This document shows, in pieces, positions 16,501-62,653 of a DNA stretch of 64,000 nucleotides. Below the pieces are notes generated by a model. That model was not told the DNA's origin. It saw only the letters and a program-made list of their open reading frames with translations, and did no database searches. Every line of letters begins with the position of its first letter. The first letter of the stretch is position 1. Origin of the DNA: Piromyces finnis finn (taxonomy: Eukaryota; Fungi; Neocallimastigomycota). Location of the stretch: contig MCFH01000043.1 of assembly GCA_002104945.1 (NCBI GenBank), positions 186,001 through 250,000 of the forward strand. Direction: 5' to 3'. Both the position numbers and the translations under genes were made by a program.

Positions 16501-19500
16501 ATAACTAGAAAGAATCCAATTACTGGAGAAGAAGTTGTTGAAGAAATTGTTGAAGAACAATCAATTGAACAACCAGTAGAAGTTTCTTCTGAACCAAAGG
16601 AAGAAATTATTGAACAACAACCAATAACTGAAGTTGTTGAAGAAGTTGTTGAAGAACAACCAATTGAACAACCAGTGGAAGTTTCTTCTGAACCGAAGGA
16701 AGAAATTATTGAACAACAAACAATAACTGAAGTTATTGAAGAAGTTGAAGAAGTTGTTGAAGAACAACCAATTGAAAAACCAATTGAACAACCAGTAGAA
16801 GTTTCTTCTGAACCAAAGGAAGAAATTATTGAACAACCAATAACTGAAGTTGTTGAAGAAGTTGAAGAAGTTGTTGAAGAACAACCAATTGAACAACCAA
16901 TTGAACAATTAGTAGAAGTTTCTTCTGAACCAAAAGAAGAAATTATTGAACAAAAACCAATAACTGAAGTTGTTGAAGAAGTTGTAGAAGTTGTTGAAGA
17001 ACCTAAAGAAGTTGTTGAAACTGAAATAAGAGAAGAAATTATTGAAATTCCTTCTACAGAACCAGTAAAGAAAAGATATATTAAGAAAATTATTAGATAC
17101 ATAACTAGAAAGAATCCAATTACTGGAGAAGAAGTTGTTGAAGAAGTTGTTGAAGAACAACCAATTGAACAACCATTAGAAGAAGTTTCCTCTGAACCAA
17201 AGGAAGAAATTATTGAACAACAACCAATAACTGAAGTTGTTGAAGAAGTTGAAGAAGTTGTTGAAGAACAACCAATTGAACAACCAATTGAACAACCAGT
17301 AGAAGAAGTTTCTTCTGAACCAAAGGAAGAAATTATTGAACAACCAATAACTGAAGTTGTTGAAGAAGTTGAAGAAGTTGTTGAAGAACAACCAATTGAA
17401 CAACCAATTGAACAATTAGTAGAAGTTTCTTCTGAACCAAAAGAAGAAATTATTGAACAAAAACCAATAACTGAAGTTGTTGAAGAAGTTGTAGAAGTTG
17501 TTGAAGAACCTAAAGAAGTTGTTGAAACTGAAATAAGAGAAGAAATTATTGAAATTCCTTCTACAGAACCAGTAAAGAAAAGATATATTAAGAAAATTAT
17601 TAGATACATAACTAGAAAGAATCCAATTACTGGAGAAGAAGTTGTTGAAGAAGTTGTTGAAGAACAACCAATTGAACAACCATTAGAAGAAGTTTCTTCT
17701 GAACCAAAGGAAGAAGTTATTGAACAACAACCAATAACTGAAGTTGTTGAAGAAGTTGAAGAAGTTGTTGAAGAAAAACCAATTGAACAACCAATTGAAC
17801 AACCAGTAGAAGAAGTTTCTTCTGAACCAAGGGAAGAAATTATTGAACAACCAATAACTGAAGTTGTTGAAGAAGTTGAAGAAGTTGTTGAAGAACAACC
17901 AATTGAACAACCAATTGAACAATTAGTAGAAGTTTCTTCTGAACCAAAAGAAGAAATTATTGAACAAAAACCAATAACTGAAGTTGTTGAAGAAGTTGTA
18001 GAAGTTGTTGAAGAACCTAAAGAAGTTGTTGAAACTGAAATAAGAGAAGAAATTATTGAAATTCCTTCTACAGAACCAGTAAAGAAAAGATATATTAAGA
18101 AAATTATTAGATACATAACTAGAAAGAATCCAATTACTGGAGAAGAAGTTGTTGAAGAAATTGTTGAAGAACAACCAATTGAACAACCAGTAGAAGTTTC
18201 TTCTGAAACAAAGGAAGAAATTATTGAACAACCAATAACTGAAGTTGTTGAAGAAGTTGAAGAAGTTGTTGAAGAAAAACCAATTGAACAACCAATTGAA
18301 CAACCAGTAGAAGTTTCTTCTGAAACAAAGGAAGAAATTATTGAACAACCAATAACTGAAGTTGTTGAAGAAGTTGAAGAAGTTGTTGAAGAAAAACCAA
18401 TTGAACAACCAATTGAACAACCAGTAGAAGTTTCTTCTGAACCAAAGGAAGAAATTATTGAACAACCAATAACTGAAGTTGTTGAAGAAGTTGTTAAAGA
18501 AACTAAAGAAGTTGTTGAAACTGAAATAATAGAAGAAATTATTGAAATTCCTTCTACTGAGCCATTAAAGAAAAGATATATTAAAAGAATAATAAAATGT
18601 ATTAAAAGAAATAATCCAAACAATGGAAAAGAAGAAGTTGTTAATGAAATTATATCAGAAGAACCAACACCAGAAGAGAAAGAAATAATTGTAGAAGTTC
18701 CTTCTGATGAAAAAGATAAAAAGAAATTTGTAAAAAGAATAATAAGAATTATAAAAAGAAAGAATGAAGACTCTAATATGGAGGAAATTGTAGAAGATAT
18801 AATATCTGAAGAACCAGTGAAAGAAGAAAGAGAAATAACCGTTGAAATTCCTACAGGTAAAAAGGGTAAAACAAAATTTGTTAAGAGAGTAGTTAAATAT
18901 ATTACAAGAAAGAATCCATTTAATGGAAAGGAAGAAGTTATTGAAGAAATTGTTTCAGAAGAGCCTGTTGAAGATTCTAGCAAAAAATCAATATTTAAAA
19001 TAATAACTGATAAAATAAAGAATGTTTTAAATAATAATAATGAAGAAGAAATAATTTGTATGCCAAGAGATGAAAATATTGAAAATACTGAAAAGGAAGA
19101 AACAGAAGAAGAGATAGAAGATGGTGATATTAATGATAGTAAGGTTTTATACAGAGTTTATAGTAAAAACAGAAGAAACAAGATTAGAAATAGAAAAAGA
19201 AATAAATCATTTGAAACATCTTCAAAAACAGCGAATATTCCAAATGAATTTACTGAAAATAAGGAAGATCAAAGCGAAACTTATGTTAATAAAAAAATTG
19301 ATGAATGTAATAGTAGAATATTGAATAATTCAATTATAGAAGAAGCTACTGATGAGCAATTAATGATGTCAGAAACAATAATAGATGATGATTTAATTAA
19401 CGAGGTGCCATTAGAAAATAAAAATAAGCTTATTGATCATAATAACAATGAAATAATAATATTATCGCAATCAACAAGTGGAAAAAAGAGAAGAAATAGT

Positions 19501-23606: not shown

Positions 23607-25995
23607 ATGTCAGTCCTTTATATTAAAGATAAGAATTATATCAGACGTGGTACTCGGTCTTATGGTATCCCCTTAGATGATATTCGCTCCTTCTTTATCC
23701 GTGGTATTCGATCATGGTCAGTAAATATGCTATGGGAAAAACTCGAGGTTATTCTAGAAGATAAATTTAATTCAGTTATTAGTGTTAAATATTTTCAAAC
23801 TTTCAATGATCACTTTTTCTTAGTCAAGGTTCATGGTTCATCAAAAGATTGTATTAAAATCTTACACATGTTAAAGAAGAAACTTTCAGTTACCTCAATT
23901 TCCTTTTCAGCTCGTAGTAGAAGGAATCACAAATACACTTTTTCCACTCTCAAACGTAAAATTTTAGTTTCTAATAAACATCAACATTCTATTCAACAAT
24001 CTCATCAACAATCCGATCTTCAACAAGATCTTCAACAAGATCTTCAACAAGTTTCCCATCATGAAAATATTCCATATCTACAGCAAACACAATTTCAATC
24101 TCAACATTCAACAATTAATTCTAATAGTTCTATCAACTCTGATAACAGTTCAATAGTTGATAGTTCTTCAGTTTCACAGCCATCTAGTAATAGTTCTACT
24201 TATTCCTCTGATGCATCATCCATTAATAACGATGACTTTAATAATAATAATAATAGCAACGATTCTTCCTCATCCTCATCCAACAAGCCTGATAACTTTT
24301 CTTTTTGTCTTAGTTGGAACACCAATGGGATGGGTGGAATCACGAAAAGAGAGATAGTATTAGCTATTTCACAGCTATTTTCAAACCATTATTTTTATGT
24401 TTCCAAGAAACTGGTAATGGTTCTGGATCGAATACAGATTATCTTTGTCGTGTTACTTTGCGAAACTATAGACACTTTTTCAAGAAAGCTGACGAATCAG
24501 TTCCGGGAATGAGAGGTTTATATTTAGGTTTTCACAATTCGTGTCAAGCCTCACTTGAAAACTTCTCTGGAAAGTATATTATTTCTATTTATACTTTTAG
24601 TCTCTGGAATAGATTCAAATGCTCGATTGGAAATGTTTATATGCCTCATAGTCATCACAACATCTATGTTGATCATGCAAAGTTAGAAGTTCGCTTGTGG
24701 TTACAAACTCATTCATCCCATCCATCGATTCTTGTTGGTGATTTTAATATGTCTAAAGTTAAATTATCCAACTGGTTATCAACTAATGGATTAGGAGATT
24801 GGGAAATTCTTCCGCTTAGAGGGTCTACTATCTCTTGGACTCGAGGTGATCAATCTTCCGACATTGACCATGCTCTTATCAATTCGAAGATGAAAGATCT
24901 TATTCACTCAGGATCATTTATAAATAATTTTTATCCTGTATCAGACCATAAGCCACTTCTTATTAATGGTAAAATTATTCCTATGGAAGATTTTTCTAAT
25001 GACTTTAATGTTCCTAAGAAAATTCTGAAATGGAATAGATTAAAATGTATTGAGGAAAAGGAATCTATTCTTAGTCATAATAAATTCCAAATACTTTCAG
25101 CAAAATTCAACGATCCTAATGTTTCTACAGATGAACTTTCCAAAGAGTTTACTTCAACTGCTTTTTCAATTGCAGACGAGCTCAGTATTACCTCAGCAAA
25201 TAATGCTATAAAGTCTTCATTTCATATTTCACAACAAATTTTTAATCTCCAAAAAATCAAAATGAAGTTGTATAAGAGATTTAAAAAAGAAAGAATTTAT
25301 GATATAGATGAATTTATTAAAAGAATTAAAATCTACCGTAAGCTCATTGATTACATCCACAAAAGATGTAATGAATTTAGGAAACAAGAATATCTTCATT
25401 GGATTAAAACAGGATGTGAGTATATGAAGAGTCATAATCCTAAGAAGGCCTGGAAATGGATCAAGAAAACTGCAAAAATTGGAAAAGATTCTTTCTTTAT
25501 TGCTCAACCAATTAAAAATAAAAATGGAGAATTAGTTGTTGCTACAGAAGAACAACTAGAAGTGTGGCATGATCATTTCGAAAACCTTGCATCAGATCCA
25601 AGTGGTGTAAGTCTTGATTTGGAGCATTGGTATGAAGAACCAATGAATAAACGTTTTTCACTTCCTATGCTTGATGAGTGGGATATCAACCAAGATATTA
25701 GTATTGATGAAGTCAAGTCAGCTATCCTCTCTACTCCAAATTATAAAGCATCAGGTCCGGATGGTATTCCAATTGAATTTTACAAAGCATTAATTCCATC
25801 AAGTAATGATTCTAATAATGCTACAGATAATAATTCTTCCGGTAATACTACTTTAGATAATGATGCTCATGGTTTAAATTTTATTCTTAAATTATTCAAC
25901 CGTATTTGGGATGGAGACTTCCCAACTCATGGAATGAATCCAGTATTGTTTCTATTCCTAAGAAGGGAGATTTGACAGATTGTGATAACTATCGA
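23607..25995 (+). pseudogene. Frameshifted single-ORF retrotransposon polyprotein (RRM-like, APE, partial RT)
   Basis: Joining ORFs 23607-24329, 24335-25921 and 25921-25995 at the two frameshifts gives one continuous polyprotein collinear with copy 2. Confidence 0.85.
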
Positions 25996-27440: not shown

Positions 27441-28728
27441 TCATTGCTTTAAGCAAACAAGTGGGGCCATACCTTCTCTATTTGTAGTTACGTTATAAAT
27501 TTTACCCCAACCATCTTGAAATTCTTCAATAATTTTAACCTCATCATTTAATCTTATTTCAACTTCATCATCTAATTTTGGTATGTATGGATAAGTGCAT
27601 ACATATGTTTTTTCATTTTGATTTGTACTAGCTACATTTATATTACTAGATTGATTCATTGAATCACGTCTTAAATCATAATTTACTTGATCTTCGTTAT
27701 TGTTATTATCATTTCCAGTACTGTATTGATGTTCATTATTATCTCCAGTATTGTATTGATATTCATTATTGCTGTTATTTACAGTACCATATTGATATTC
27801 ATTATTGCTATTATTTACAGTACCATATTGATATTCATTATAATTAACATATTCGTAATTTGTAGGTGTAACTGAATTGAATTTAAGAGTACCGTTTGGA
27901 TTATATGGAAGAGTATTGGTATTTGGAGATGAAGGTGCATTTCCATAGAATGGCATTGATTCTGGTCTAGTATTCTTTTTTTTGTTATAAACAAAGAATC
28001 CAATAATTCCAACAACAAAAACTAATCCAATAACAGACCATGTAATTATTCTAGATGTACTTTTAGGATTATCATCCTTATTATCGCTACCTATTAATAT
28101 TTCGTAATATTTATATTAGAAAATTAATAATGCTATTTTTCTTTTTCTTTTTTTTTATTTTATTTTCAATACAATTACCTTTATCATTAGACTCTACATC
28201 TTTATTATTTTTTTTAGCATTTGGTGTTGTAGAAGATGAGGAAGAAGAAGAAGATGAAGAATTTGGGTTCATTGTTGAGCTTCCACTTTGTGTAGATATA
28301 TTACTATTCATATTAGAATTAGCTATATTTTGATTTTCTTGGTTATTTGTATTATTTATATCTGTTTTAGTTGTTTTCGTATCCACTATTTGTTTTGTAG
28401 CATCATTATTTATTTTCTTACAATTTGCATCAATTATTCCATCGCCTGGTGGAGTACTTAATTTTACAGCACCATAGTGACATTTTATGCAATCCTTATA
28501 TCTGTTTATGTTTTCATTATTACAATAACATTTTACAGTTTCGATTTCTTCAGGATAATTATCAGCAGAAGGAGGATAAATAGGGAATTTACCTGTTCCT
28601 CCAAATTCTGCATGACATTCTAATATTACATTACAATTTCCACATAAAAATGTATTAAGCTCACTATATGCAAATTGTATGAAACAGGATACAAATAAAC
28701 TTATTATAATATTTAATTTTGAATTCAT
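27441..28728 (-). CDS. Type I membrane protein A: signal peptide, 8-Cys ectodomain, S/N stalk, TM, Tyr-rich tail, C-terminal SH3 (399 aa; exons 28728-28179 and 28090-27441)
   Basis: GT-AG phase-1 intron at 28178-28091 gives a continuous frame ...SNDKG/SDNKDD...IITWSVIGLVFVVGIIGFFVYNKKKNTRPESMPFYGN. SH3-like end: YVCTYPYIPKLDDEVEI...DGWGKIYNVTTNREGMAPLVCL. Confidence 0.88.
27715..27845 (-). repeat. 36-bp/33-bp coding repeat NEYQY(GTVNNSN) in the cytoplasmic tail of protein A
   Basis: NEYQYGTVNNSN x2, then NEYQYNTGDN and NEHQYSTGN. Confidence 0.8.
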
Positions 28729-31384
28729 TGTTTTTTTTTATTTTCTTAATATATCAAGATTGCTATTTATTTGTAAAAATTATACTATTATTAAGGTTAA
28801 ATAATTTATTTGATTATAAAAACATGAATAAATTGATAAAATTGGTTAGATATAAAATTAAATATCTTTGATTATATATTTTTGTAAAAATATATATATA
28901 TATATATATATATAGATTATTAAAGATTTGATCTTACAATTATTATTTTGATATTTAAATATTTAATTATTTATATAATAATATTGAATTATTTTTTATT
29001 ATTTTAAATTTTAAATCAATTCTCGTTTTTAATTTATATTATATACGAATCTTTTTTTTTAAAAAAAAATCAATTTAACTGAACTTCATTTATTATTATT
29101 ATTATTATTTTTTTTTTTTTAATGAAAAAGTAGTAATAATAATAATAAATTTTATTGAGGTTTTAAAAAAAGAGAATAGTATTTTTCAAACTTAGATAAA
29201 GAGAGATACCATATAATAATGATTATAATTTAAGAAAAAAAAAAGAATATTAAAGTTGTACACATTTACAATAAAATTTTTAATTGTTTTATATTTTCTA
29301 TGGATTAGTAAAAAAAAATTTTTTTCCAATGTTTTACACAAAGAAAAAACTAATTATTAAAGTTCTAATTTTAATAAATTAATTTATATAAAAGGGTATT
29401 AAAAAATAATATAATAAATAAAGTTTATTAGTAAAAATGTATTGTTTTATTATAAATATAAAACATAATATATAAATAATATACTTTAGGTATATTATAT
29501 AATATATTTTGTTTAAACAAAAAAAAAAATTGTAACAAACACATTTCATTGGTTAAGATAAAAAATAGTAACATTAATATTTAACATTTATATATGAACT
29601 ATTTCATTATAATAAATATATTATTTATTTTGTAATAAATATTTATATATAATTATATAATTATTCTATTGATATACATTATAAATAAAATGATTATATA
29701 TTAAAACAAATTATTGGCTATAAAATTATGAATTCATTCATATGTAAAAATATATATTAACTTTTATGTAGTACAAGCTAATAAAAGGTAGTTGAAATTA
29801 AATAGAAATAATAAAACAGAAATGTTAAGTAGAAAAGACAAAATTATTGTAGAAAAGAGGTTTACTTTATAAATTGAAAAATATTCATTATTTATAATAT
29901 TATCCTTTATACTAGTAAAAAGGATAGTATTTTTATATTTTTTATAATAGTAAATATCATCTTCAATTTTATATAATAAAGAATGATAAATTGATAGGAA
30001 ACAGTAGAATGAAATTATAAAAATTTATTAAAGATTTATAATAATAAATAATGATAAAAAATAAAGTTTAACAATTAAACCTTAATTATTAATATTTTAA
30101 TAAACAATCTTAAGTTTATTTTTATTTATAAAATTTAAAATTGTTATTATTTTCATCATAATCTGTTGAAAAGAAGGCTATTTTCAAAATATATATTTTT
30201 TAAAAAAAAAATATAAAAAAAAAATAAAATTATATATTCTACTTTTTATTCCTCATTATTAATTCAAAAAATATTTATTCAAGATGTATCCTTTTTTTTT
30301 TTTCCACATATAAAAAATTAAAAATTATTAATATTCTTTTAATAATTTTATTAATAAAAAATTTACGCCGCAATAATTAAAAAAGAAAGAAAAGTTAAAA
30401 ATTTCATATAATAAATAAAAGTAAATAGGTTTACCTATAATTCAGTAAAAAGGAAAGGAGTAAATGAAGTTCAAGTATCTAAATGTAAATTATCATTTCA
30501 ATAATATAATTTTTTTTTAAATATTGATAAAAAATAACTTAAAAATGATAAAATTTTTCATTATGAAAAAGAAATGTTAATTTATTAGTTTTTTTTTTTT
30601 TTTATACTGTAGTTAATATATAAAATTTGATAAAGTTAATCTTATAAAAAAACCTTTATATAATCCAAATTTATTTTTTCTTTTATTGTAATAATTATTT
30701 AATCATCCATAAAAAGGTGGTATTGTGCGGCCATTTTCCTTTTAATTTATATTTTAAAAGTTTAGAATAAAATTTGATGGAGTCAATGTTGAATTGGGAA
30801 ATTAATAAAGTAATCTCCAATTTAATATATTAATATTAAATGAAAATTTTATTTTCAGAAAACAATGCATTAATATTGAAATTATAATGTAGCTTTTTTT
30901 TTTTTTTTTTTTTTAAATATTAATGAATAAAATAATCTTAATTGTCTTATAGGATTAACCATTAGGTCGTCAAATTTTTGATAAATTAAAGAATTACGGC
31001 AACCAATTTATTATAACAATTGTATAATAAAAAACCCTTTTATAAAATTTTTTTTATAATATGAATTTTTATTCATTCAAAAATGTCATTAATTTAAAAA
31101 TTGTTCTATAATTTTTTTTATACTATAAATTAAATTCATGTATACAATTAATTTATAATTACACATCTATTTACAGTAATTATATCTATTTAAAATATAT
31201 TCCTATATAAATAATAATAAAAAAACATTAATTACAATATATATATGAAAACATGCGTAGGCCATTTGTATAGGACTATTATAAAATAATAGAATTTAGA
31301 TATCTTTATATTTATATAAAAAAGGTTTCATTCTATTTAACTATTAAAATGTTAAAAAAGTCCGTATTTTTTTCTTCCTATTTA

Positions 31385-32446
31385 TTAATACATTGGCAAA
31401 CTTTCTCTTCTTTTATCTTTAATGTAATTCCTAAACTTAATACCTCCATATACGGTTAGAATACCACCAACAATAGAACAAATTATAATTAAATTAGTAG
31501 GATTGAAACTTTTAGTTTCAGGTAATGCTACTGGTGAAATATTATTTACATTTTTTATATCTGTAGTGCTATTGTTATTATTATAAATAAGATTTGGTTC
31601 AGTTTTATCAAATGCTTTACATTGTGTTTGAATTACTTGATCAGTAATATTAAGTTCTGAATTATTAGATAGCGTTAATAAACATTTTGTACATACTGAA
31701 TAAAATCCAATATGATTTTGTTCAGATTTGCATAAACATTCACCAAAGTTATTTTGTGGTGGAGGATAAATATTTTCTAAGGTATAATCGTTCAGATTAG
31801 ATAAAGTACTAAAATACTGGCATTTACTATATATAGTAGAGCATTGTTGAGCACATATATTAGTTATCGAAGGATTTATAATAGGATTTACTGTTGGATT
31901 TGTAATAATAGTAGATGTTACACTTGGTATAATAACAGGTACTATAACAGATGTTGTGGTTGGAGTTTGTGCTATTATTGGTGGAGGAGGGGCTTTTTGT
32001 TGAATTACTGGTGTTGATGCTACTATTATTGGGTTAGTAGTAGTTTTGGTAATTTTTGGTTTAACAGTAGTAACAATAGGAGGTTTAACTTGAGTAACTG
32101 ATGATTTAGGTTTTGATACAGACTTTGGTTGTTGAGGTTGAGGTTGAGGTTGAGGTTTTGATTGGGATTGGGATTGTGGTTTTGATTGAACATTATTATT
32201 TTGCTTATATGTAGTTCCATCAGGTTTTGTAATAACTGTATTTGATTTATTAACTTCAGAAACAGTTTTGCCATTTACTTGTGAAGAAGAATGTTCATTT
32301 GAAGTGTATGAAGTAGTTCCGTCTGATGATGTATGTGATGACCATGAAGATGATGATTCCCAACTCGAACGAGGCCTACAGTTTACTTTATAAATTTTAA
32401 TGGTTAAAATAAAAGTAATTACAAAAATTATGTGTGTAAATTTCAT
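31385..32446 (-). CDS. Type I membrane protein C: signal peptide, S/T/P/Q mucin-like region, 8-Cys domain, TM, 17-aa tail (353 aa, intronless)
   Basis: Hydrophobic N-terminus MKFTHIIFVITFILTIKIY; PQPQPQ and PVIT-rich stalk; CAQQC..C..IYPPP..ECLC..VCTKC..C; TM LIIICSIVGGILTVYGGI; tail ends KRRESLPMY. Confidence 0.88.
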   Translation of the reverse strand: MKFTHIIFVITFILTIKIYKVNCRPRSSWESSSSWSSHTSSDGTTSYTSNEHSSSQVNGKTVSEVNKSNTVITKPDGTTYKQNNNVQSKPQSQSQSKPQPQPQPQQPKSVSKPKSSVTQVKPPIVTTVKPKITKTTTNPIIVASTPVIQQKAPPPPIIAQTPTTTSVIVPVIIPSVTSTIITNPTVNPIINPSITNICAQQCSTIYSKCQYFSTLSNLNDYTLENIYPPPQNNFGECLCKSEQNHIGFYSVCTKCLLTLSNNSELNITDQVIQTQCKAFDKTEPNLIYNNNNSTTDIKNVNNISPVALPETKSFNPTNLIIICSIVGGILTVYGGIKFRNYIKDKRRESLPMY

Positions 32447-33566
32447 TTCCAGATTTTTAAAAATGAGACTTTGATTTTTTTTTTTTTATTACATATATAT
32501 GTTATGATCAATTATTTAATTGTAAATAATTGTTACTAATATATATATATTAAATAGCTAAAATAATATATACTTGTATATTATTTATTTAATTTTATTT
32601 TTATTTGCTGATAAATTTGGATTAAGCACTTTAAATATAAGTAAATAAAAACTTTTTACAATTTGTTAATTTGTTATGCCATAAGAAAAGAAAAACCTTT
32701 AATTATTTTTTAAAAATTTATTGCTTCTTAAAATCAATCAATATTATCTATGAATGTATATATATATATATATTTTTTTTTTTTTTCAAATTATATTTTA
32801 AAATTTAACTATATATATATTTATAAAATAAAAAATATAACTTAAATTATAATAATATTTTTTAGAAAAAAAAAGTAAAGGAAATTTTTTTTCTTTTTAT
32901 AAAATCTTGTATATTATTATTTGAATTATTAATGATAAAATTTAATATAAAATAAAGTTTACTTTTAATATAAATTAATATTTTTTTATTTCTAAATGAA
33001 TTTTAATATTTAATTTTATTAAAAAATAATAGAAAAAATATTAAAAAATATAAAGTTAATTATTAATGGTACATGCCGTTTGTGTAACTTGTCAAATAAA
33101 ATAAAATGGAAAATCATCTTTAAATACTCTAAATATTTCAATTTAAGTTTTTAATATAATAATATATTTAATATATATTAATAATATATATTATAATAAA
33201 ATCATTAGAATTAAAAAAAAAAGATAAAAATTTTTTTAAAAAATATACAATTTTGTTTTTTTTTTATATTATTACTAATTATAATACCATTTTCTTAAAG
33301 TTAAATTTAATGTTTGTTATATATAACTTTATTATTTATTATTCTATATTGTTTTAATGTGTTGTACAATTTTAAAAAACTTACCATTTTAACCAATAAT
33401 GAAGTAGTTTCATACATTATCATACATTATGCTATTATTATCTGTTTTAAATTCCTTTAGAATGTAAGTATTACAATTTTTTTTTAATAAATTGTTAATT
33501 TACCTGAATAAAATAACTAAAAAAAAAAAAAGGATAATTAAAACTCCTATTATTAAGACCTAATAA

Positions 33567-33729
<163 letters not shown>

Positions 33730-34098
33730 TATAATCTATGATATTATAGATTATTTTAAAAAAGTTTATATTTTTTCATATTTATAATAATTATAAACAT
33801 CAACTGTTAATTTTATTTTTTCAATAACTATTCATAATAAAAATAACACATTATATCAACTATTGATAAATATATTCTTTTTTATATATATTTGTTGGAG
33901 TTTTTATTAATATATGATGAAAATAAATAATCTGTATGAGTTAAAATAGAATTATGTTGCATTTTTTTTTTTTTTAAAAATTACATAAACTAATTTTATA
34001 ATTTATGAAGTTATGAATATTTTTCATTTTTCATATTATCATTTTATTATTTTGTTTCTTAGAACAGTTTTTTTTAATTTTAAAGACAAATAATAAAG

Positions 34099-34129
<31 letters not shown>

Positions 34130-34391
34130 CTAATTAGAGTGAAAAATATCACATTTTAAAAATGTTATTTTAAAATCATTAAATTTATTCCATCTGAATC
34201 TGTCTACTTTTACTGTGGTAATTCTTTACTAAATCTAAATTCTGAATAATTAAAATTTTTATATTCAATTTGAATAAAAGTCAATATATAATATATATAT
34301 AAATCTAGGATAAATACTAAATATTTTATTTAATTATTATTTTTTATTAAATATGTAAATATATAAAAGCGATTTTTTTCTCATAATATTT

Positions 34392-34393
34392 AA

Positions 34394-34452
<59 letters not shown>
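34392..34452. repeat. (AAAT)n microsatellite, about 15 units
   Basis: Direct read of the sequence. Confidence 0.9.
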
Positions 34453-34454
<2 letters not shown>

Positions 34455-36849
34455 AATTATTAATTATTAGTAATTATTAAATATTATATATAATATATAT
34501 AAAGTAATTCATTATTTATTAGAATTATTTTTTTTTAATTTAAAAAAAACTAATTTGCTACTTCAAAAAAAGGAAGAAAGCTAATTATTATCTTTATATT
34601 TTATAACTAAGTAGCTCCATATTTATAAAATATATATAGTTACATAAAAAAAATATAATGGAATTTAATATTAAAATATATATTTCTAAATATAATAGTC
34701 AATTGAAATAACAGACATATGATCTATTTCAAATTTAAAGAGTTACAAAATGACAGTTAATACAATGACTTAATATATAATGTACATTATTGAAAAATCA
34801 GCCATCAACTATATTAAAAGAATTTTATAGTTTAATATATAATAATGCATAAAAATTATTATACAATATTTAATAAGCCATAATATACATATTTAATTAT
34901 TAATATTTTATAATTTTTCTAAATATGGAAATTAGTTTATTTTTTTATTATATTTTTACACATAACCCATTAGTATATGGAGGTGTTTCAAAATTTAATT
35001 TATATTAAATAAAAAAGTACCAAAGTTTTTTATTAAAATTGGTAAAATAGTAATTTGATATATTACAATAAATTACAATATAAATGAGATTATAGTTTTA
35101 TATTTATGTAAAACAAAAATAAAACTGTTTAATATGAGGTCATTTTCTATTTAAGATATAAGTTATTGAAATTTGATATTTCAATATGAAAATAATTAAG
35201 GATTTTTTAAATAAAATAAAATTTCAATACACATGTAACTTTCTAAAATAAATTTATTATTATTTTGGTAGTAATTAGATAAACTATTAAAGATCAAAAA
35301 TAAAAAAAAAAGGATAAACTTTTACTTAATTAATATAATATCAAATGAAAATGAAATATGAAATTACCAATGTTAATTTAACCGTCAAATAATTCATAAA
35401 TTTCTAACTTTTTAATTTATATTATCCTATAACATTGCTGTATTATAGTAAACATATATTAAATTTAATTAAATGATTACACAAATTTAGATTATTACTT
35501 TTTTAAATAATATATAAATTAAAAAATATAATCTAAATTATACTATTTTAATAAATAATTAACAACTTTAATAAATATTATTTAGAAATTTTAATAATAT
35601 AGATATCTAAATTTAGTATTTTTTAATTTAATTATTGTATATTAAAAAATTAAATATATATAATAAAGTTATTAATATAATTTAAACAATAAACTTAATA
35701 TAAATTCAATATATTAATTATCAATTCCATTAAATGAAAATAATATATTATGTTTATTAATATTTTAATTATTAGCTAATATATAAAAATTAATTTCTAA
35801 TATATTAAAATTATATCAAAGTAGAGTTAGTTTAAAAAATTTGTCAACAAGAAACATGAACCTTATTGTAAAAAAAAAAAAGCATTTTCTCATTTGTTAT
35901 GTGATATTAGTAGTTTAATGATGATAATAAATATAAATACAAGAAATAAAAATAGAAAAGTAATAAAATAACCATTAATATTGTTATTCTTTTAGCACCA
36001 AATTAATTTTTAATAAAACATATTTATAGTCATCCTAATTTCCAATTTATATTATTTTAATTGTGTTATAATTATATTACAGTTTAAATTAATAATAATT
36101 TATAAAGTTTGTAGGATAATTAATATTAATATATTAAAATTTTTATTATTATTTTAGATTTGAAATCATCATTTATAAAATTTATTTTTTATTATTTATA
36201 TATTTTAAAAGTAATAATTTCAATAAAAAAAAAATTCTTTTATAAACTTTTTTTTTTTCTGTTTTCTTTTTAATTATAATTGTTATATAAAAATAATAAT
36301 AAATTTATTATTATTTTATTTTATTTTATTTTTTTTATTCAACTAAAAATAAAGAAGACCTTTTATTAAAACAGATTTATATAATTTTTAATTTTTTTTT
36401 CAAATTAAGCAAATAACAAACAAAAAAACAAATAAAAAAATTGTTTTGAAAAATAAAACAAAACAAAAAAAAAAAACAAAAAACAAAAAAAAAAAAAAAA
36501 ACAGAAAAATACAAAGACAAGAAAAATAATACAAAAATATATATAGAACAAAAAAATTATAGAATTCCTTAATAAATTTTTAATCAAAGTAAATATATAT
36601 ATTAAATTCTTATTTATATTAAGAAAAAATAATAAAAAAAAAAAAAAAGAAAGAGAAAATTGATAATTACAAATAAATTATTTAAAATAATAAAAAATAT
36701 TTAAAAAAATGTATAGGCAATAATATAAATAATATAAGTATTAAAATAATAGATAAATATAAAAAAGATTAAATGAATAGATATATATTAATTAACATTT
36801 AAATGCAATTTATTGTAATGAAAGTCTATTTTTTTTTCAGTTGAAAGAT

Positions 36850-37039
36850 GTATAAATTTTATTAGATTAAAATAAACAATACAATTTTATAATTAAAAAG
36901 TAGAGATGAAAATATAAAAATAGATATTACATAAATATATAGTATAAACTTTATTAGATTAAAATAAACAATACAATTTAATAATTAAAAAATAGAGATG
37001 AAAATATAAAAATAAAAATAGACATTACATAAATATATA
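36850..37039. repeat. About 92-bp tandem duplication immediately upstream of gene B
   Basis: gtataaa..ttattagattaaaataaacaatacaattt..tagagatgaaaatataaaaata..ttacataaatatata occurs at 36850 and 36942. Confidence 0.85.
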
Positions 37040-37156
37040 AAGTTTGAATTATTATTTCTATAAATATATAAATACATTAATATCTTGAAAAACTTTTTAT
37101 TAAAAAGAAAAAAATTTTAAAACTTTTTATATATATATATATTTTTTTTTGAATAG

Positions 37157-38411
37157 ATGAAATATTTGAATTTATTTTTAAGTACTATATTATTTGCATC
37201 AGCAGCATTGGGGGGTAGTAAATTAGATGCCTGCCCACTTGAATGTACTCTTGTAAATGATTGTGTTGTTGATAAAAATGTCAATGGTGTATATAGTCTC
37301 TATCCACCAAAAGGAGAACTTGGTAAATGTTTCTGTAGTAATGTTCAACAATACTTTGATTGTTTAAATTGTGCTCAACAAAGTGAAAATAAAAAACCAT
37401 ATGCTATAGGTACATTTAACAGTTCTTGTAATAAAATTACTGGAAATACAGGTGTTGCAATTTCAACTGGAGCTGCAGGAACTACAGGAACTAATACCGG
37501 ATTAAATGGAACTAATGCTAATAATGGATTAGGTACTGGAACTAATGGAGCTACAGGAACTCTTGGTAATATGAGTGAAAATAATCAAAATATTAATAAA
37601 AATTCAACTTCAACTGATACCAAGGAAAACGAAGATGGTAAATATTCTTCATATTCAATAATATTAATATTAAATATAAAAAAATTTACTAAAATTATAA
37701 AATAAAATATATAATATATTCAAAATAATTATTGAAATGATATATAAAGAAAAACCAAAAAGTAGTAAGATTCCTATTATAGTAATTGCAATTGTTGCCA
37801 TTGCTGGTGTTGCTGGATTCTTTGTATACACTCGTAAGCAAAAGGAAAGACCAGAATCTATGCCATTCTTTGGAAATTCAGCATCATCTCCAAATCAATA
37901 CGCTACTTTAGGTAGTAAGAAGGAAATGACAGATATTAGTACTAGCAATTTAACTACAGATTATAATACTCAATTTTATCCAAATGTTGATTCTAATCAA
38001 TATAATTATAACCAAGGTTCTAATGCCACATATAATAATTTCGAACAATCTCGCTCAGAATATAATAACCAATATGATTCTAATTATCAAGATTATAATA
38101 ATCAATATCCATCTGGAAATTATGAAAATGAAGTTGCTGTAGCATCTAATATTAATGTAATAAGTGACTCTGCTCAATATGAAAGTAGACGTGAATCTAT
38201 GATGCCTGGTTCTCAACCAACCTCAACTAACTTTAATGGTGCTTATGTATGTGCATACAAGTATGACCCACAATTAGATGATGAATTAGAGTTACAAGTT
38301 AATGATCAAGTTCAAATTATTGAAGAGTATGAAGATGGTTGGATGAAAGCAATTAACTTAACTACAGGAAAGGAAGGTATGGCTCCAAGAGTTTGTATAA
38401 AAGAAGCATAA
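37157..38411 (+). CDS. Type I membrane protein B: signal peptide, 8-Cys ectodomain, G/T/N stalk, TM, Tyr/Asn/Gln tail, C-terminal SH3 (380 aa; exons 37157-37637 and 37750-38411)
   Basis: Phase-1 GT-AG intron at 37638-37749, in the same position relative to the TM as in gene A. TM IPIIVIAIVAIAGVAGFFVY, then RKQKERPESMPFFGN. SH3 end: YVCAYKYDPQLDDELEL...DGWMKAINLTTGKEGMAPRVCI. Confidence 0.9.
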
Positions 38412-39529: not shown

Positions 39530-42500
39530 ATGAACAATACCAATTGTATTTTACCTACCTTACGACGTGGTCTTCGTTTCTTCGGATCTAACTCCAATAA
39601 ATCATATCTAATTTTTATCCATGATCTTAGTTCATGGTCAAAACAACGACTAATGGAATTTCTTTTAAAAGATATTCAACCTTTCAATGATATTCTTCAA
39701 TCCCTCACCAAAAAACATTCACAATCACTCGGTACCTATTTCATTCTAAAAGTCAATGGAAAATGCCCGCTTAAAGCCATGTTACTTATACACTCACTTT
39801 CTAAAAAAACTCCCAATCTCTAGTAAAATATCTTGGAAATTCATTGATAAGCTCAAAAACAATAGATCATACAAAAACAAACGATCTATCAAATCCACTC
39901 TCTGACGATTTCTATTTTAGTCATTTAAGCTCTAATGCTTCCTTTTTCTACTTATGTACTTGTTGGAACATCAATGGTTGGAACCCTGAGAAAAAGGACG
40001 GTGTTTTATACTTCATCTCTGTTTTCAAACCTGTATGTGTCTGCCTTCAAGAAGTAGGTAACAGCCAATTCCTCTGTGGTAATGCAATTTCCTCCCCATG
40101 CCTACCGAACTATAAACCAGTACACAGACGTGCTAATCCTAAAGTTCCAGGTATGAGAGGACTTTACATTGGTGTTCATAACTCTTGTTCCTTTACTCCT
40201 GAACCTCTTCTATATAAGTACATCATTTCAGTTACAATACTGTCATTTTGGAATCAGAGATGTACCATCGGTAATATTTACTTCCCGCAAACTAGATGGC
40301 CGGATGCTAGATTAATTGCTTTTGATGAACTTGATAAGTGGTTAACAACACATAACAAGTTCAACCACCCAGCTATCCTTGTTGGAGACTTTAATATGTC
40401 AGCTATTAAAATCAAATCTTATATATCACAACACTTCCCGGATTGGACTATGGCTGAGTTAACTGGTAATAATTTTACCTGGGAAAAAGGATCTAAATCT
40501 TCATGCATTGATCATATTATATACAACAAAGCTATGACAGAACACATAAACAAATCTTCAGTTTGTGAAGTTTTTCACGATGTTTCTGATCACAAACCGA
40601 TCCTTGTATCTTGTAAAAAAGACTCTTCTGATGGTTTCAAAAAGCCTAAGAAGACCTTTAAGTGGTCAAGTCATATCTGTAACACAAAGTGTTCTGACAT
40701 TCTTACTAGTAATCGCTTTGCAATTCTAGCTTCTGAGCTTGAAGCAAATTGCGATAGCCTTTCAGCTGACGATATGGTTTCAAAATTTTTAGATACCTCC
40801 AAAACTATAGGTAAAGAAATAAAAGCCATTGTGCCTGCAGATTTAAAAGGTCCAACATTTCATTGCCCTCAATACATCAAAAACTTATCACATGAAAAAC
40901 ACCTGGCTTACAAAAAGATTAAGCCCCTTTCAGATTACGCTGACATGGAAAATTATCTTAACCAGTTCTCCATATACCAAAATCTATGTAATACCATCAA
41001 AAAGGTTAAGAGTAAATTCAGATCCAATCTCTATAAAGCTAATATTGTTTCTATCGGTAAACATTTTACTGATAAAAGCTTTAGACAAGGTTGGAAAGGC
41101 CTTAAAAAACTTGTCAAACCAAGTTATTCGTCCTCCCATGTTTCAACTATTAAGGACAAGAATGGCAAGGATTTATTTACTCCTCAAGAACAATTAAAAC
41201 GTTGGGATGAACATTATGAAAGTCTTGCATCTGATGTTACAAATCACAGCTTAAATCGTAGTTATTGGGAAAGAGCCTTCCGATTCAATTATATCAATCA
41301 AATAGCATGGGATATAAATGGTCCCATTTCTATTGAGAAAATTAGGAATGTTGTTCTGTCAATGAAGAATAATAAGGCTCCAGGTCCCGATGGTATCCCA
41401 ATTGAATTCTTCAAAGCTTTCTTTTGTAACGAGGAACTGGAAAAAGAACATAAGTCTGCTAGAAATTGTCTTAAATTAATTTTTAATAAAATCTGGAATG
41501 GATCCTTTCCTTTGAATTGGAACTCTGCTTCTATTGTTTCTATTCCAAAGAAAGGCGATCTTTCTGATTGTAATAATTATCGTGGTATTTCTCTCATCAA
41601 TGTATGTCTTAAAATCATTTCAAAAATTGTAAAAGATAGAATTTCAAAGTATGCTCTTTCTCATAACTTTATTAGACCTGAACAATTTGGTTTTCACAAT
41701 AAAGAAGAATGTATTAGCTTATTTGTTTCCATTAGAGAAATCTGTCAAATAAGAAAATTTAAAGGAAAAGCCACTTATGTTGCCTTTATAGACCTTATAA
41801 AAGCATATGACTCAGTTCCTATTTTTAATATTCTTACAAAGTTATATAAATTAGATATACGTGGTAAATGTTTTGATTTTCTCAATAATCTCTACTCTAC
41901 CTCTAAAGCTCGTGCACGTTTCTTGGATATGCTTTCCAATGAATTCCCTATCAACCGTGGTGTAAGACAAGGATGTCCTCTTTCTCCTATACTTCTTAAC
42001 CTCTTTATCAATGATATTTTAAATAAATGTGAAAGGCTTGGAGTTAAAGAAAAACCTTCAAAAGATGCTCAATCTAGTCCTTGATTGGGCTAATTTAAAT
42101 AAAATGTCTTTTGGAATAAATAAATGTGCAATTATTGTTGTTAAACCTATCAACTTTAATAGATCCCCTAGTTATGTCGACCCAACATTTTACATCGGTA
42201 TGTACTCGATTCCAAAGGTTTCTTGCTATACTTATCTTGGAATCTCATTCGACGAAGATCTTTCTCTGACTCCTATTCTGTCTAATATGTACGAAAAAGT
42301 TCAGAAATCTTTATTCTCTTTTAAGAACTTCCTCACCAACAATTGTGTTCCTATTGGCTTAAAAAATATAGTAATTCATTCTTATATTTTTAGCAAAGTC
42401 TCTTATTATGCTCCTTTACTTGGTTCCAACAAAAATAGAACTAGAAGAGTCCAATCTCTTATCAATACTGCTGTTTTATGGAGTGTCAATAGCTTTCACA

Positions 42501-43093
42501 ATAAAGGTTTTAATAACAAAGATTTTGTTTTTGAACGAAATTCATTTATTAGTCTGTATGCCCATACAAGAGATATGAAGATTTCTACCCTTTCAGGTAT
42601 TTGTGCTGCGCAGCAAATGAAATGCTTTGTTAAATGGAGAAAATCAAATTGTATAATTAAAGATCTCGTCCGATCTATTCCTCCCATGTCTCATTACTCT
42701 TGGGCCAAAGAATCTTGTTCACTACATAAGAAGCTTATGAAAATAAATATTAAAAGTACTAAAGATATTAGAGAACATTATTGGAATAATAGTAGCCTAA
42801 ATAATGGAAGTAAAGCCCTCAGATATACTAACAACAAATTCCTTAATTCAAATCGCCTAATGCATATCGGTCTTAACAAACCTCACTTAAATTTAGGAAT
42901 TACCTGGATTATTCGTATTCGATGCGGTTATGAAAATATTACCCGAATTGTTATTGCCAGTAATAGAGTTACTCCTGACTGCCTTCGTGTCTGTCCATGT
43001 TGCGGATATGACGAACAATCTTTTTATCATTGGATATTAGAATGTTCTGCATTCTCTGAATACAGAGCTTCTTCACTAATGAAAACATTATGA
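39530..43093 (+). mobile_element. Decayed non-LTR (LINE-like) retrotransposon, copy 2: N-terminal domain, APE, RT, CCHC knuckle
   Basis: APE motifs CWNINGWN, CLQEVG, LVGDFN, CIDHII and SDHKP. RT motifs KAPGPDGIP, NYRGISL, PEQFGF, FIDLIKAYDSV and GVRQGCPLSP. C-terminal CPCCG..QSFYHWILEC. Disrupted near 39820 and by a frameshifting deletion at about 42045. Confidence 0.95.
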
Positions 43094-44193: not shown

Positions 44194-45897
44194 TTATTCA
44201 ATATTTTCTAATATTTCAGACAAAATAGTAGCGGATAATGGAATATAATATACATCAGAATTTGCTGTTACTTTTCTGAAAATAATTTTGTGATCCTTAA
44301 ATTCTGTTAGTTGAGTTCTAAAGGTGGTTTCATTACTAACTAAGAATTTTTCTAAGCATAGATTATAATAGGCAGAATGTGAAAGACCTAATGATTCATA
44401 AGAACTATGAGATTTATTTTCATTTCCTTTATTTAAAATTAGACCTTCTCCTGCATTAGATATATCTTCAGTAGATAGATTCTCTGCTTCTGTAACAATT
44501 TGATGTTCTGCTAATACTCTAAAGATTTGACGACCATTGGATGTAAGACAGGATAACACATGCATGACACCTCTTGCATCCAATTGATTCTTATGTAACA
44601 TAAAGGAATTTTCAAAACTGGTTTCAATAGTATATGATTCATAGGTAGTTATATCATGCCATATAAAATTATAACGATATACTTTTGAATTATCCCAGAG
44701 GAAGGATGCGTTAATATGGTCAACGGAAGCAATGATATGAATATTTGGAATGGCTGCAATGAGGGAAAGTGTAGTTTGTGTCTTTTCATTACGAAGGTTA
44801 ATACCATCAATATTATGAATTAGGAGGAAAATACGTTTTATTTTTCTATCTTTGTTGGTAAAATAATCTTCAATTCTTGAAATTTGTTCTTGTACAGTAC
44901 CCAATACACCTGTATACTTTATAATTTGCTCTGATATTGCATTTAATATTGCTTTAATTGATACAGCAGGTGAAAACCCATTAATAACAAATACTGGACT
45001 ATGATTTAAAACTTCTTTTGCAAATTTTGTTAATAATTTAATTTTTGAACCAAATCCGTAAAATGCCAAATTAAATCCCATGATTAATTCAAAATACCAT
45101 TGTTGGAAATTTTGTTCATGATATGATGTCAACTTTTTTATTTCTGAAGCATGCTTTTGTGGTGTCTTTTTTAATAATTCAATATATTCCTTATGATCTA
45201 AAATTGGAAGTTTAGATAGTGTATTATCTGAAGTAAGATTTTTTTTATTATGAAGATTTTGAAAGTATTGTTCATAACCTGCATTTTCGATTTCATCCTC
45301 TATACGTTGAAGACCATTTATTTTTTCTATTGGTTCTTCATCATCACTTGAATAATCATTATCTTGATAGGAGAGGGTTCTGTAGGTGGCCTCCTCATAA
45401 TTTATAAATCGATTATTATTTTCTTCTTCTTCTTCTTCTTCTAATTCTGAATCATAATCTGAATCTTTATCAACTTTACCTGACTTTACTCTTTTCCTTC
45501 TTTTTTTCTCTTTTTTATTATCAGTGTCATTTTCTGTTAAATGACTATTATAATTACTTAATCCAGATTTGTTTTTTTTCTCAAAACCATATAATTTTTT
45601 ACCTGATAAATAATCATTTTCTTTATCTTCTTCATCAATCGCAACGACTTTTGTTGGTATAAAGTCTGGATCGTTATAATTATTATTAATGTTTTCTTTT
45701 TCTTTTTCTACTGTAAAACCAGATAAAATCTTTTTCTTTTTTCTAGAATGTTGTGCTAAGGTGTCTAAGTGAAATGTTCTTTTTGCTGCTGCTAGTGTAG
45801 TTGAAGATATGGTATTATTTTTTTTATATGTGGTAACAAAATGTAAGGGTATCTCACTATCATTTTGATATAATATTGGTAATAATTTTTTAGACAT
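44194..45897 (-). CDS. ORC2: Origin recognition complex subunit 2 (567 aa, intronless)
   Basis: Characteristic ORC2 motifs QWYFEL..GFNLAFYGFGSK, VINGF, LIHNIDG..LR, IASVDHIN..LWD, FIWHDITTY and FRTQLTEFKDH, after a low-complexity charged N-terminus. Confidence 0.95.
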   Translation of the reverse strand: MSKKLLPILYQNDSEIPLHFVTTYKKNNTISSTTLAAAKRTFHLDTLAQHSRKKKKILSGFTVEKEKENINNNYNDPDFIPTKVVAIDEEDKENDYLSGKKLYGFEKKNKSGLSNYNSHLTENDTDNKKEKKRRKRVKSGKVDKDSDYDSELEEEEEEENNNRFINYEEATYRTLSYQDNDYSSDDEEPIEKINGLQRIEDEIENAGYEQYFQNLHNKKNLTSDNTLSKLPILDHKEYIELLKKTPQKHASEIKKLTSYHEQNFQQWYFELIMGFNLAFYGFGSKIKLLTKFAKEVLNHSPVFVINGFSPAVSIKAILNAISEQIIKYTGVLGTVQEQISRIEDYFTNKDRKIKRIFLLIHNIDGINLRNEKTQTTLSLIAAIPNIHIIASVDHINASFLWDNSKVYRYNFIWHDITTYESYTIETSFENSFMLHKNQLDARGVMHVLSCLTSNGRQIFRVLAEHQIVTEAENLSTEDISNAGEGLILNKGNENKSHSSYESLGLSHSAYYNLCLEKFLVSNETTFRTQLTEFKDHKIIFRKVTANSDVYYIPLSATILSEILENIE

Positions 45898-61703: not shown

Positions 61704-62653
61704 TTATTCCTTCTTGTTTACTTGATTTATACTATTAGTTCTTGGAATCCATGTGAATCCAACAATTAGTATAATAACTAACACAGCTACTATTGATACA
61801 GTAATTCTTACTTTTTTATTCCTATTTAAAAAAAATTATATAAATATAAAAGAATTTTAGGGTTAGACAAGAATATGATTTTTATAAAAAAAGAGTGTGA
61901 CTTCAAGAGAAAAATAGAAACATATATATTTGTATGTTTAAATACACCTATTATTATTTTTGTTAAATGAAAACAAAATTATATATTTAAAATTTAAACT
62001 TACTTGATAGATATTTTCTTTTCAACTTTTTCAATGGATTTCATTACTTTACTATTTTTATGGTTTTTTGAATAAAGACTTGCTGAAGATTCATAAGATA
62101 AAAAGTTGGATGAACTGCCATTATTTTGGAATAATTTTTCCTTGGATAATGTACTATTATTATCATTCACTAGATTTTGCCTACTACCAAATGAAATTTC
62201 AGCCATACTATTACTTACAAAGTTATCTATAGAACGCTGTAAATTATCGTCCAAAATAATAATATCAAGAGCTTCAGGATTTCCTTTGATACGGTTAAGG
62301 AGGTATTCTTCGTCGGAAATTTTTTTTAATGGTTTTTCTATTTCAACTACCTTAATTGTTCCTTCATGTTTAGCTTTATTAAAACTTTTTATTGAAGAGA
62401 GTTGGGGACTATATGGGAATATTTCTTCTTCTATTGGAACAAAAAGCTTTAAATATCTTGGTATTATTCTTGGCTCAAATGATTTTGATATATGTTCTTT
62501 TATTGAATATATTTGATTATTAGTAGATACTCTTATAACAAATGCTTTTGAACTAGAATCTCCAATTCTGAAACAAGAAAAAGTTACTTTCTTTGACTTT
62601 TCTGGCTCCTTTTCTACATTTATTACAATATTATTTTTGTCTATTGAATCCAT
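61704..62653 (-). CDS. Crinkler-N (ubiquitin-like) domain protein with a C-terminal transmembrane anchor (255 aa; exons 62653-62004 and 61821-61704)
   Basis: Phase-2 GT-AG intron at 62003-61822 adds KNKKVRITVSIVAVLVIILIVGFTWIPRTNSINQVNKKE*. The N-terminal VTFSCFRIGDSSSKAFVIRVSTNNQIYSIKEHI...YLKLFVP...LDIIIL resembles the CRN N-terminus. Confidence 0.72.

Follow-up and report, generated by a model that had tools for sequence, protein, structure and literature searches.

An eight-cysteine YPP head domain shared by a Neocallimastigomycota-specific family of candidate surface receptors in Piromyces finnis

The closest described counterparts of the genes studied here are Fus1, the cell-fusion protein of Saccharomyces cerevisiae; the Wsc1-3/Mid2 proteins; the Sho1/Opy2/Msb2 module of the HOG (high-osmolarity glycerol) pathway of yeast; and, for the outer domain, the fungal CFEM family. 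Fus1 spans the membrane once, as a type-I protein whose outer part is rich in Ser/Thr and whose C-terminus is an SH3 domain, Sho1 has four transmembrane helices, the tail of the Wsc proteins carries a short Rom2-binding motif, and in the CFEM protein Csa2 an Asp situated shortly before the C-x-C pair serves as the haem ligand. The SH3 domain of Fus1 is reported to be an exception in that both position 37 and position 54 are Cys (PMC5823434), and its specificity is unique and proline-free (PMC2756588). The CFEM domain follows the consensus PxC[A/G]x2Cx8-12Cx1-3[x/T]Dx2-5CxCx9-14Cx3-4Cx15-16C and has been reported only in Ascomycota and Basidiomycota (PMC4530338). In the current study we analysed three genes, here called A, B and C, that lie at 27.4-38.4 kb of a 64,000-nucleotide stretch of the anaerobic gut fungus Piromyces finnis (contig MCFH01000043.1, positions 186,001 to 250,000 of the forward strand), referred to below as the window. 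A first-pass annotation of this DNA had described the three as a cluster of paralogous receptors with a common ectodomain of eight Cys and a YPP motif, which we call the head. Little is known of the perception of surfaces, substrates and their own wall by anaerobic gut fungi, which are key degraders of plant fibre in herbivores. Since two of the three proteins end in a cytoplasmic SH3 domain, they are good candidates for lineage-specific surface sensors.

Gene models and the shared eight-cysteine head

When the heads of A, B and C are aligned, eight Cys, the triplet Y-P-P and a Tyr preceding the sixth Cys are invariant, and every head motif quoted in the first-pass annotation lies where it had been placed. 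The signature C-x2-3-C-x5-6-C-x20-33-C-x-C-x8-12-C-x2-C-x17-21-C holds in all 40 of the family members that we collected, each of which also carries [YF]PP in the long loop between the third and the fourth Cys (C3-C4). BLASTP matched the heads of A and B at 5e-8, those of A and C at 4e-5 and those of B and C at 0.009. A hidden Markov model (HMM) built from SH3-type heads only, i.e. those of the A and B kind, reached the C-type heads with E values of 5e-15 to 5e-13; run the other way, with a C-type profile against the SH3-type heads, the search gave 5e-10 to 6e-6, and hhalign joined the two groups with a probability of 96.7% (E 4.6e-10). Judged by these sequence comparisons, the three heads are homologous, and the common ectodomain that had been proposed is borne out by significant cross-profile, hhalign and BLASTP matches. 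Chance or artefact as the source of the likeness was rejected because of the cross-profile statistics together with the RNA evidence given below. An HMM scan of the window found no copy of the head beyond A, B and C.

The window is very AT-rich, with 11-15% GC between genes and 20-26% GC within them. The spliced translations of A (399 aa), B (380 aa) and C (353 aa) match the database proteins P0001, P0040 and P0002, respectively, letter for letter, and two of these three entries, both from Piromyces finnis, are named there as hypothetical or as SH3 domain-containing proteins. For gene A, RNA contigs from four runs of three studies join 28178|28089, which is the modelled intron with a one-base ambiguity, because a G flanks both sides; RNA thus upholds the spliced model, on which the receptor description of gene A had been made to depend. 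One RNA contig shows a second intron upstream of the gene A start codon (28785-28937, minus strand, 153 nt, GT..AG), in the 5' untranslated region (5'UTR). The gene C transcript is unspliced, as an RNA contig spans 31250-32481 without a gap. In one RNA run (X3), gene C shows a 6-nt deletion at 32131, in the P/Q-rich stalk, and a 1-nt insertion at 31353, in the 3'UTR; these length differences are probably strain variation in a repeat. For a B-type orthologue (P0036), 18 transcript-like contigs run from the head to the SH3 domain in one continuous open reading frame (ORF). The features of the three genes, in window coordinates and with the evidence in brackets, are the following.

28938..29050, minus strand: gene A 5'UTR exon (one RNA contig, run X1, joins 28784|28938)
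28179..28728, minus strand: gene A coding exon 1, with signal peptide, head and N/S/T-rich stalk, ending in phase 1 (RNA contigs)
28420..28647, minus strand: gene A head, eight-Cys [YF]PP domain, residues about 22-108, from the C29 codon at 28644 through the C103 codon ending at 28420 (alignments; local HMM E 1e-21; AlphaFold2 model)
28091..28178, minus strand: gene A phase-1 intron, 88 nt, GT..AG, directly upstream of the transmembrane helix (spliced out in RNA)
27441..28090, minus strand: gene A exon 2, with transmembrane helix, tail, SH3 domain and stop codon (sequence)
27981..28058, minus strand: gene A transmembrane helix, residues about 195-220 (hydropathy window mean 2.52)
27945..27968, minus strand: gene A juxtamembrane motif RPESMPFY (alignment of SH3-type members)
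27657..27671, minus strand: gene A motif RRDSM, RRESM in most members (R, R and S invariant in the alignment)
27444..27593, minus strand: gene A C-terminal SH3 domain, Cys in place of the canonical Tyr54 (Pfam SH3_1 E 9e-6; alignment)
31385..32446, minus strand: gene C, single exon, 353 aa, with signal peptide, mucin-like stalk, head, transmembrane helix and 15-aa tail
31877..32377, minus strand: gene C mucin-like stalk, residues about 24-190 (sequence composition)
31619..31855, minus strand: gene C head, eight-Cys YPP domain, residues 198-276, membrane-proximal (alignments; HMM)
31433..31495, minus strand: gene C transmembrane helix, residues 318-338 (hydropathy; NLIIIC core conserved)
31388..31411, minus strand: gene C C-terminal motif RRESLPMY, resembling the A/B juxtamembrane motif (alignment)
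37157..37637, plus strand: gene B exon 1, with signal peptide, head and G/T/N-rich stalk, ending in phase 1
37232..37429, plus strand: gene B head, eight-Cys YPP domain (alignments; HMM; full-length AlphaFold2 model)
37638..37749, plus strand: gene B phase-1 intron, 112 nt, GT..AG (sequence; the spliced product is the deposited P0040; orthologue cDNA contigs are continuous)
37750..38411, plus strand: gene B exon 2, with transmembrane helix, RPESMPFF, RRESM, SH3 domain and stop codon
37758-37835, plus strand: gene B transmembrane helix (sequence; full-length AlphaFold2 model)
37848-37871, plus strand: gene B motif RPESMPFF (alignment)
38187-38201, plus strand: gene B motif RRESM (alignment)
38256-38408, plus strand: gene B SH3 domain (Pfam E 5e-12; AlphaFold2 model; alignment)

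The head, of about 80 aa, is predicted to consist of four helices held by the eight invariant Cys, which presumably form four disulfides. The AlphaFold2 (AF2) model of head A, made from a 16-sequence alignment, has a predicted local distance difference test (pLDDT) score of 88.5 and a predicted template-modelling score (pTM) of 0.79, with helices at 9-21, 38-47, 53-67 and 75-86 and the YPP loop between the first two of them; the same four helices appear in the head of the full-length model of B (pLDDT 70-87). In Pfam, neither the heads of the three window proteins nor 16 heads of the wider family matched any model at E<=10 (CFEM, WSC, Opy2 and CBM10 included), and the family profile had no match among PDB sequences at the same threshold. 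Foldseek searches with the head gave nothing significant against PDB (best E 3.4) or Swiss-Prot, the ESM Atlas shape search returned no match, and the VIA second-look and wide fold searches found nothing significant outside the family. Among the clusters of the AlphaFold database (AFDB), Foldseek found the family's own cluster at a template-modelling (TM) score of 0.87 (E 8e-6), while the TM score of matches outside the family was <=0.47 throughout. No CFEM chain was among the PDB fold matches of the head, although weak helical matches can escape a fold search. By the profile and fold searches made, the head appears to have no demonstrable relatives outside the family, in agreement with its earlier description as an unrecognised domain.

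Architecture, conservation and range of the family

A and B share one order of parts: signal peptide, head, low-complexity stalk, one transmembrane helix, a long N/Q/Y-rich tail and the C-terminal SH3 domain; as had been noticed before, they also have in common the phase-1 intron just before the helix. In C, the signal peptide is followed by a mucin-like P/T/Q/S stalk, the head, a short spacer, the helix and a tail of 15 residues, so that the membrane-adjacent head behind a mucin-like stalk and the absence of SH3, both pointed out in the first-pass annotation, are directly seen in the sequence. The full-length AF2 model of B contains the SH3 domain with its beta strands (pLDDT ~80) and a transmembrane helix at 168-189 (~50), and leaves the stalk (~25) and the tail (~30) disordered. 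The SH3 domains of A and B both score above the Pfam gathering score (PF00018 / PF14604), with 25.6 bits for SH3_1 in A (cut-off 22.9) and 46 bits for SH3_9 (cut-off 30) and 42.2 bits for SH3_1 in B, and the closest solved structure in a PDB sequence search is an SH3 domain of CIN85 (E 3e-9). Across 24 SH3-type members, both Tyr of ALYDY, Trp36 and Pro51 are invariant, whilst Tyr54 is replaced by an equally invariant Cys (A-P-x-V-C-[ILV]-K) and position 37, after the conserved Trp, holds a non-aromatic residue, Met or, in gene A, Gly. In the gene A tail, at 27700-27860 (minus strand), an N/Y-rich unit of 12 residues (EYQYGTVNNSNN) is repeated in tandem, with about three copies in all, and RNA assemblies break there.

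Two short elements stand out in the tails of A and B. The juxtamembrane element R-P-E-S-M-P-F-[FY]-G-N-x3-S-P lies about eight residues past the transmembrane helix, and its RPESMPF core is invariant or nearly so (90% or more) in the 24 SH3-type members, the position that follows being F or Y. The other, N-Y-E-x-R-R-E-S-M, lies ~15 residues upstream of the SH3 domain. The last residues of C-type proteins are K-R-R-E-S-L-P-M-Y, as far from the membrane as the RPESMP motif is in A and B; this retention of R-R-E-S-L-P beside R-P-E-S-M-P links the C tail to the A/B tails. Therefore, C is indeed short in its tail and devoid of SH3, as had been claimed, but it is not simply a short-tailed protein. 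A basophilic-kinase site has the form R-x-x-S-x-P, and so does the mode-1 motif of 14-3-3. Both R-P-E-S-M-P and R-R-E-S-L-P fit this form and could represent a phospho-regulated site. At the other end of C-type proteins, a Ser/Trp-rich N-terminal stretch (window 32230-32380; residues ~23-75, likewise ~23-75 in P0007) is strongly conserved between Piromyces and Neocallimastix and missing from two further lineages of the C type (P0004, P0006); this stretch could form another small module.

The family was delimited with an HMM of the head, a search that the first-pass annotation had proposed. Among 1.84 billion (1.84e9) representative proteins this profile found 15 clusters at E<=1e-3, and all named members are Neocallimastigomycota, namely P. 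finnis, Piromyces sp. E2, Neocallimastix californiae and N. lanati; the other members come from assemblies of the Joint Genome Institute (JGI) and Logan. The family is thus lineage-specific among its named members, as had been suggested. No paper on this family in anaerobic fungi turned up in the literature searches. When the tail and the SH3 region were used in word-based searches, these gave family members only, and therefore reached no outside kin of this cassette; a word search that took the alignment of full-length A/B proteins as its query was flooded with words of low complexity and yielded only two proteins. When JGI metagenome contigs were scanned for EE[YF]EDGW and RPESMPF[FY], 26 loci were obtained. 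Head and tail occur together at 22 of them, on AT-rich (21-30% GC), transcript-sized metagenome or metatranscriptome contigs; one more AT-rich locus (L032) is partial and has tail pieces only, and the remaining three, on GC-rich contigs, have only a generic SH3 domain in common with the family. All full-length proteins and transcript contigs with the RPESMPF[FY] and SH3 tail carry the head, which indicates that head and tail cassette are tightly coupled. Reuse of the cassette with other heads was considered and rejected, the YPP head being present in all 22 AT-rich contigs. At three metatranscriptome loci (L020, L021 and L033), head and tail lie in two overlapping frames, which could reflect a retained intron or an assembly frameshift.

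In a maximum-likelihood tree of the heads, the A clade (93/97) and the C clade (100/99) are well supported, and B-type heads fall into weakly resolved groups. In three Neocallimastix assemblies, A-, C- and B-type genes lie within ~19 kb of one another in the order A-C-B, as in the window, with some gene orientations different; both SH3 genes have an intron at the same place, a position also found in Piromyces sp. E2. The three assemblies are from close relatives and so amount to effectively one independent comparison, and the comparison of gene order rests on Neocallimastix, the Piromyces sp. E2 contig being too short. The synteny check suggested at first pass therefore shows the trio kept in Neocallimastix, and its presence in both genera indicates that it predates their split. 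The mean pairwise identity over the 24 SH3-type members differs greatly from one region of the protein to the next.

head: 35%
stalk: 19%
transmembrane helix: 48%
juxtamembrane motif: 76%
linker: 39%
RRES motif: 58%
SH3 domain: 73%

The same gradient is seen between the two genera, as P. finnis B and a B-type protein of N. californiae are 39% identical in the head, 95% in the motif and 90% in the SH3 domain.

Fragments resembling long interspersed nuclear element (LINE) retroelements lie on the plus strand on both sides of the cluster, at 23607-25975 and 39844-43093. The left one contains an endonuclease/exonuclease/phosphatase domain at 24.3-26.0 kb, and the right one an endonuclease domain and a reverse transcriptase at 39.8-42.1 kb. 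Elsewhere in the window there are an ORC2 gene (44197-45897, minus strand), with a RecA-like ORC2 domain (E 1e-88) and an ORC2 winged-helix domain, a giant open frame of 5,370 codons (4564-20676, plus strand) and an ORF at 62003-62653 (minus strand) with a weak match to the Crinkler N-terminal domain (E 3e-4, below the Pfam cut-off).

Proposed role and alternative explanations

We propose that A, B and C are members of a family of type-I cell-surface glycoproteins that is specific to Neocallimastigomycota and has the new head domain as its core. In A and B, a disordered and probably glycosylated stalk would carry the head at its tip, where this fast-evolving domain could bind an extracellular or wall ligand, and the conserved tail could recruit cortical partners through the SH3 domain and a phospho-regulated R-x-x-S-x-P site. 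The SH3 domain, with its modified binding surface, would be part of a constrained intracellular output. In C-type proteins, the outer order is reversed, with the mucin stalk first and the head at the membrane, and the chain ends right after R-R-E-S-L-P; such a protein may act as an SH3-less partner, competitor or regulator with a shared head and juxtamembrane site. It is with moderate confidence, and in slight preference to its contrary, that we regard the mode of action of A, B and C as resembling that of fungal single-pass surface sensors such as Fus1 and Wsc/Mid2. Given the conservation gradient and the strictness with which head and tail are coupled, a receptor-like role seems more likely than a purely structural one. 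The three proteins would then be putative sensors, with C a conceivable co-receptor or decoy, as the first-pass annotation had inferred. A more specific version of the proposal, in which the YPP head is a new disulfide-stapled helical fold that senses a ligand for an SH3-coupled single-pass receptor system that arose in anaerobic gut fungi, A and B are the receptors and C, which lacks SH3, is tied to them through the shared phospho-regulated R-x-x-S-x-P site, we put forward tentatively and consider rather doubtful.

Several points weigh against this sensor-like reading. Surface location, glycosylation, disulfides, ligand binding and signalling are inferred, and the head could be structural or adhesive instead of being a sensor. 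Support for the gene B intron is confined to its sequence, the deposited protein and orthologue contigs. The kept gene order could reflect ancient tandem duplicates that have simply stayed together. In the full-length AF2 model, neither RPESMPF nor RRESM is ordered (pLDDT ~30-45), which gives no support for a contact between these motifs and the SH3 domain; docking of the SH3 domain on them was accordingly set aside, although the model does not refute it either.

The head might alternatively be a very divergent member of the secreted, Cys-rich helical domains of the CFEM/CAP22 type, which we regard as unlikely. Like the head, CFEM (PF05730; Csa2, Rbt5, Pth11, ACI1) is fungal, extracellular and helical, has eight Cys with a central C-x-C and often stands beside a Ser/Thr-rich stalk and a membrane anchor; the order of the Cys in the head echoes the CFEM consensus (PMC4530338), and the head of gene C has the C-A-x-x-C of that consensus. 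Independent language-model searches with heads A and C both ranked CAP22 (PF28223, a Colletotrichum appressorium protein) as the closest named family (0.83/0.70), followed by CFEM (0.69/0.61); these Atlas feature scores are below 0.9 and thus count, by the tool's own statement, as leads only. Of 30 weak matches among AFDB clusters, four are annotated as CFEM (TM score 0.36-0.44), and CAP22 ranked third in the Swiss-Prot fold search at a non-significant E of 3.3 (TM score 0.32). However, the CFEM model was matched by none of the 16 family heads even at E<=10, the family profile reached no PDB sequence at that threshold, and all AFDB matches outside the family stay below a TM score of 0.5. Only three of the seven Cys spacings overlap those of CFEM; the other four are outside the consensus, including that of the C3-C4 loop, which has 20-33 residues with the invariant [YF]PP in place of the roughly 5-10 implied by the consensus, and an Asp at the haem-ligand position (2-5 residues before C4) is not conserved, being present in only 12 of the 40 members. 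CFEM has moreover been reported absent from early-diverging fungi (PMC4530338). Because of the missing HMM match, the spacings, the long C3-C4 loop and the unconserved Asp, we do not file the head under CFEM, and the reservations voiced at first pass about the YPP insert and the haem-binding Asp are supported. A CFEM-like action, i.e. capture of haem, iron or a hydrophobic ligand, or a part in wall structure or adhesion, seems similarly doubtful. If a remote CFEM link were true, the origin of that fungal superfamily would move before Dikarya.

The other two alternatives concern the whole proteins. A and B could be the anaerobic-fungal counterparts of Fus1, organising polarised secretion or membrane remodelling at a contact site instead of sensing the environment, an explanation that we hold to be improbable. 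It draws on the layout, type-I and single-pass, in which the outer part is rich in Ser/Thr and the SH3 domain closes the chain, and on the residues of that domain, where Tyr54 is replaced by an invariant Cys and the conserved Trp is followed by a residue that is not aromatic. To judge by its automatic name, one cluster among the Atlas neighbours of the whole proteins may also be Fus1-like. Yet the likeness is one of layout and of one SH3 position; the word-based tail and SH3 searches yielded family members only, and at position 37 there is Met, in gene A Gly, and not the Cys of Fus1. Fus1 has, to our knowledge, no folded Cys-rich head, and we know of no sexual cycle or mating fusion in anaerobic gut fungi. 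It is also conceivable, if very improbable in our judgement, that A, B and C are passive wall or glycocalyx components or adhesins, in which SH3 is only an anchor to the cortical cytoskeleton and the clustering is a relic of tandem duplication. The mucin-like or low-complexity stalks, the fast evolution of the head, expression that looks moderate and constitutive in culture RNA, and the LINE-like fragments that flank the cluster in a very AT-rich, gene-poor stretch would all suit such proteins. Two observations speak against it: C-type proteins have the same juxtamembrane motif without SH3, and motif and SH3 domain are 90-95% identical between genera in contrast to the 39% of the head, which suggests that an interaction inside the cell is under constraint, more than an anchor would require.

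Comparison with known fungal surface systems

The family represents a domain type that is covered by neither Pfam nor PDB nor the AlphaFold DB clusters, and it provides an expressed, lineage-specific candidate for the perception of the fungal surroundings. The small folded outer domain should express easily, and the highly conserved motif and the SH3 domain can be used as bait for partners. In language-model comparisons of the whole proteins, the neighbours were fungal membrane SH3 proteins, followed by clusters of CFEM, WSC and Mid2 sensors, which again are leads only.

The first-pass annotation had likened the combination of a transmembrane segment and a cytoplasmic SH3 domain to Sho1 and Fus1. 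The likeness holds for the single-pass layout of Fus1 but not for Sho1 with its four helices, since A and B have one. Beyond the type-I topology, the low-complexity outer part and the extreme C-terminal SH3 domain, A and B share with Fus1 an SH3 surface that departs from the canon by Cys at the Tyr54 position (24 of 24 members here); they differ from it in the residue at position 37, in having a folded Cys-rich head and in the RPESMPF[FY] and RRESM motifs, which are particular to this family within the searches made. With Wsc1-3 and Mid2 they have in common a signal peptide, an eight-Cys head, a Ser/Thr-rich stalk, one transmembrane helix and a cytoplasmic tail, whereas their heads match neither the WSC model PF01822 nor the Mid2 model, are predicted to be all-helical, and belong to proteins whose tail ends in SH3. 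The ingredients of the Sho1/Opy2/Msb2 module, i.e. two single-pass proteins, one mucin-like and the other Cys-rich, and an SH3 adaptor in the membrane, are also those of the trio, for which that module may serve as a useful working analogy. The heads have no match to the Opy2 model (PF09463) at E<=10, and in contrast to the module, head and SH3 here stand on one polypeptide. In their overall design, A, B and C vary the known theme of fungal single-pass sensors, built on a head domain that had previously been unnamed.

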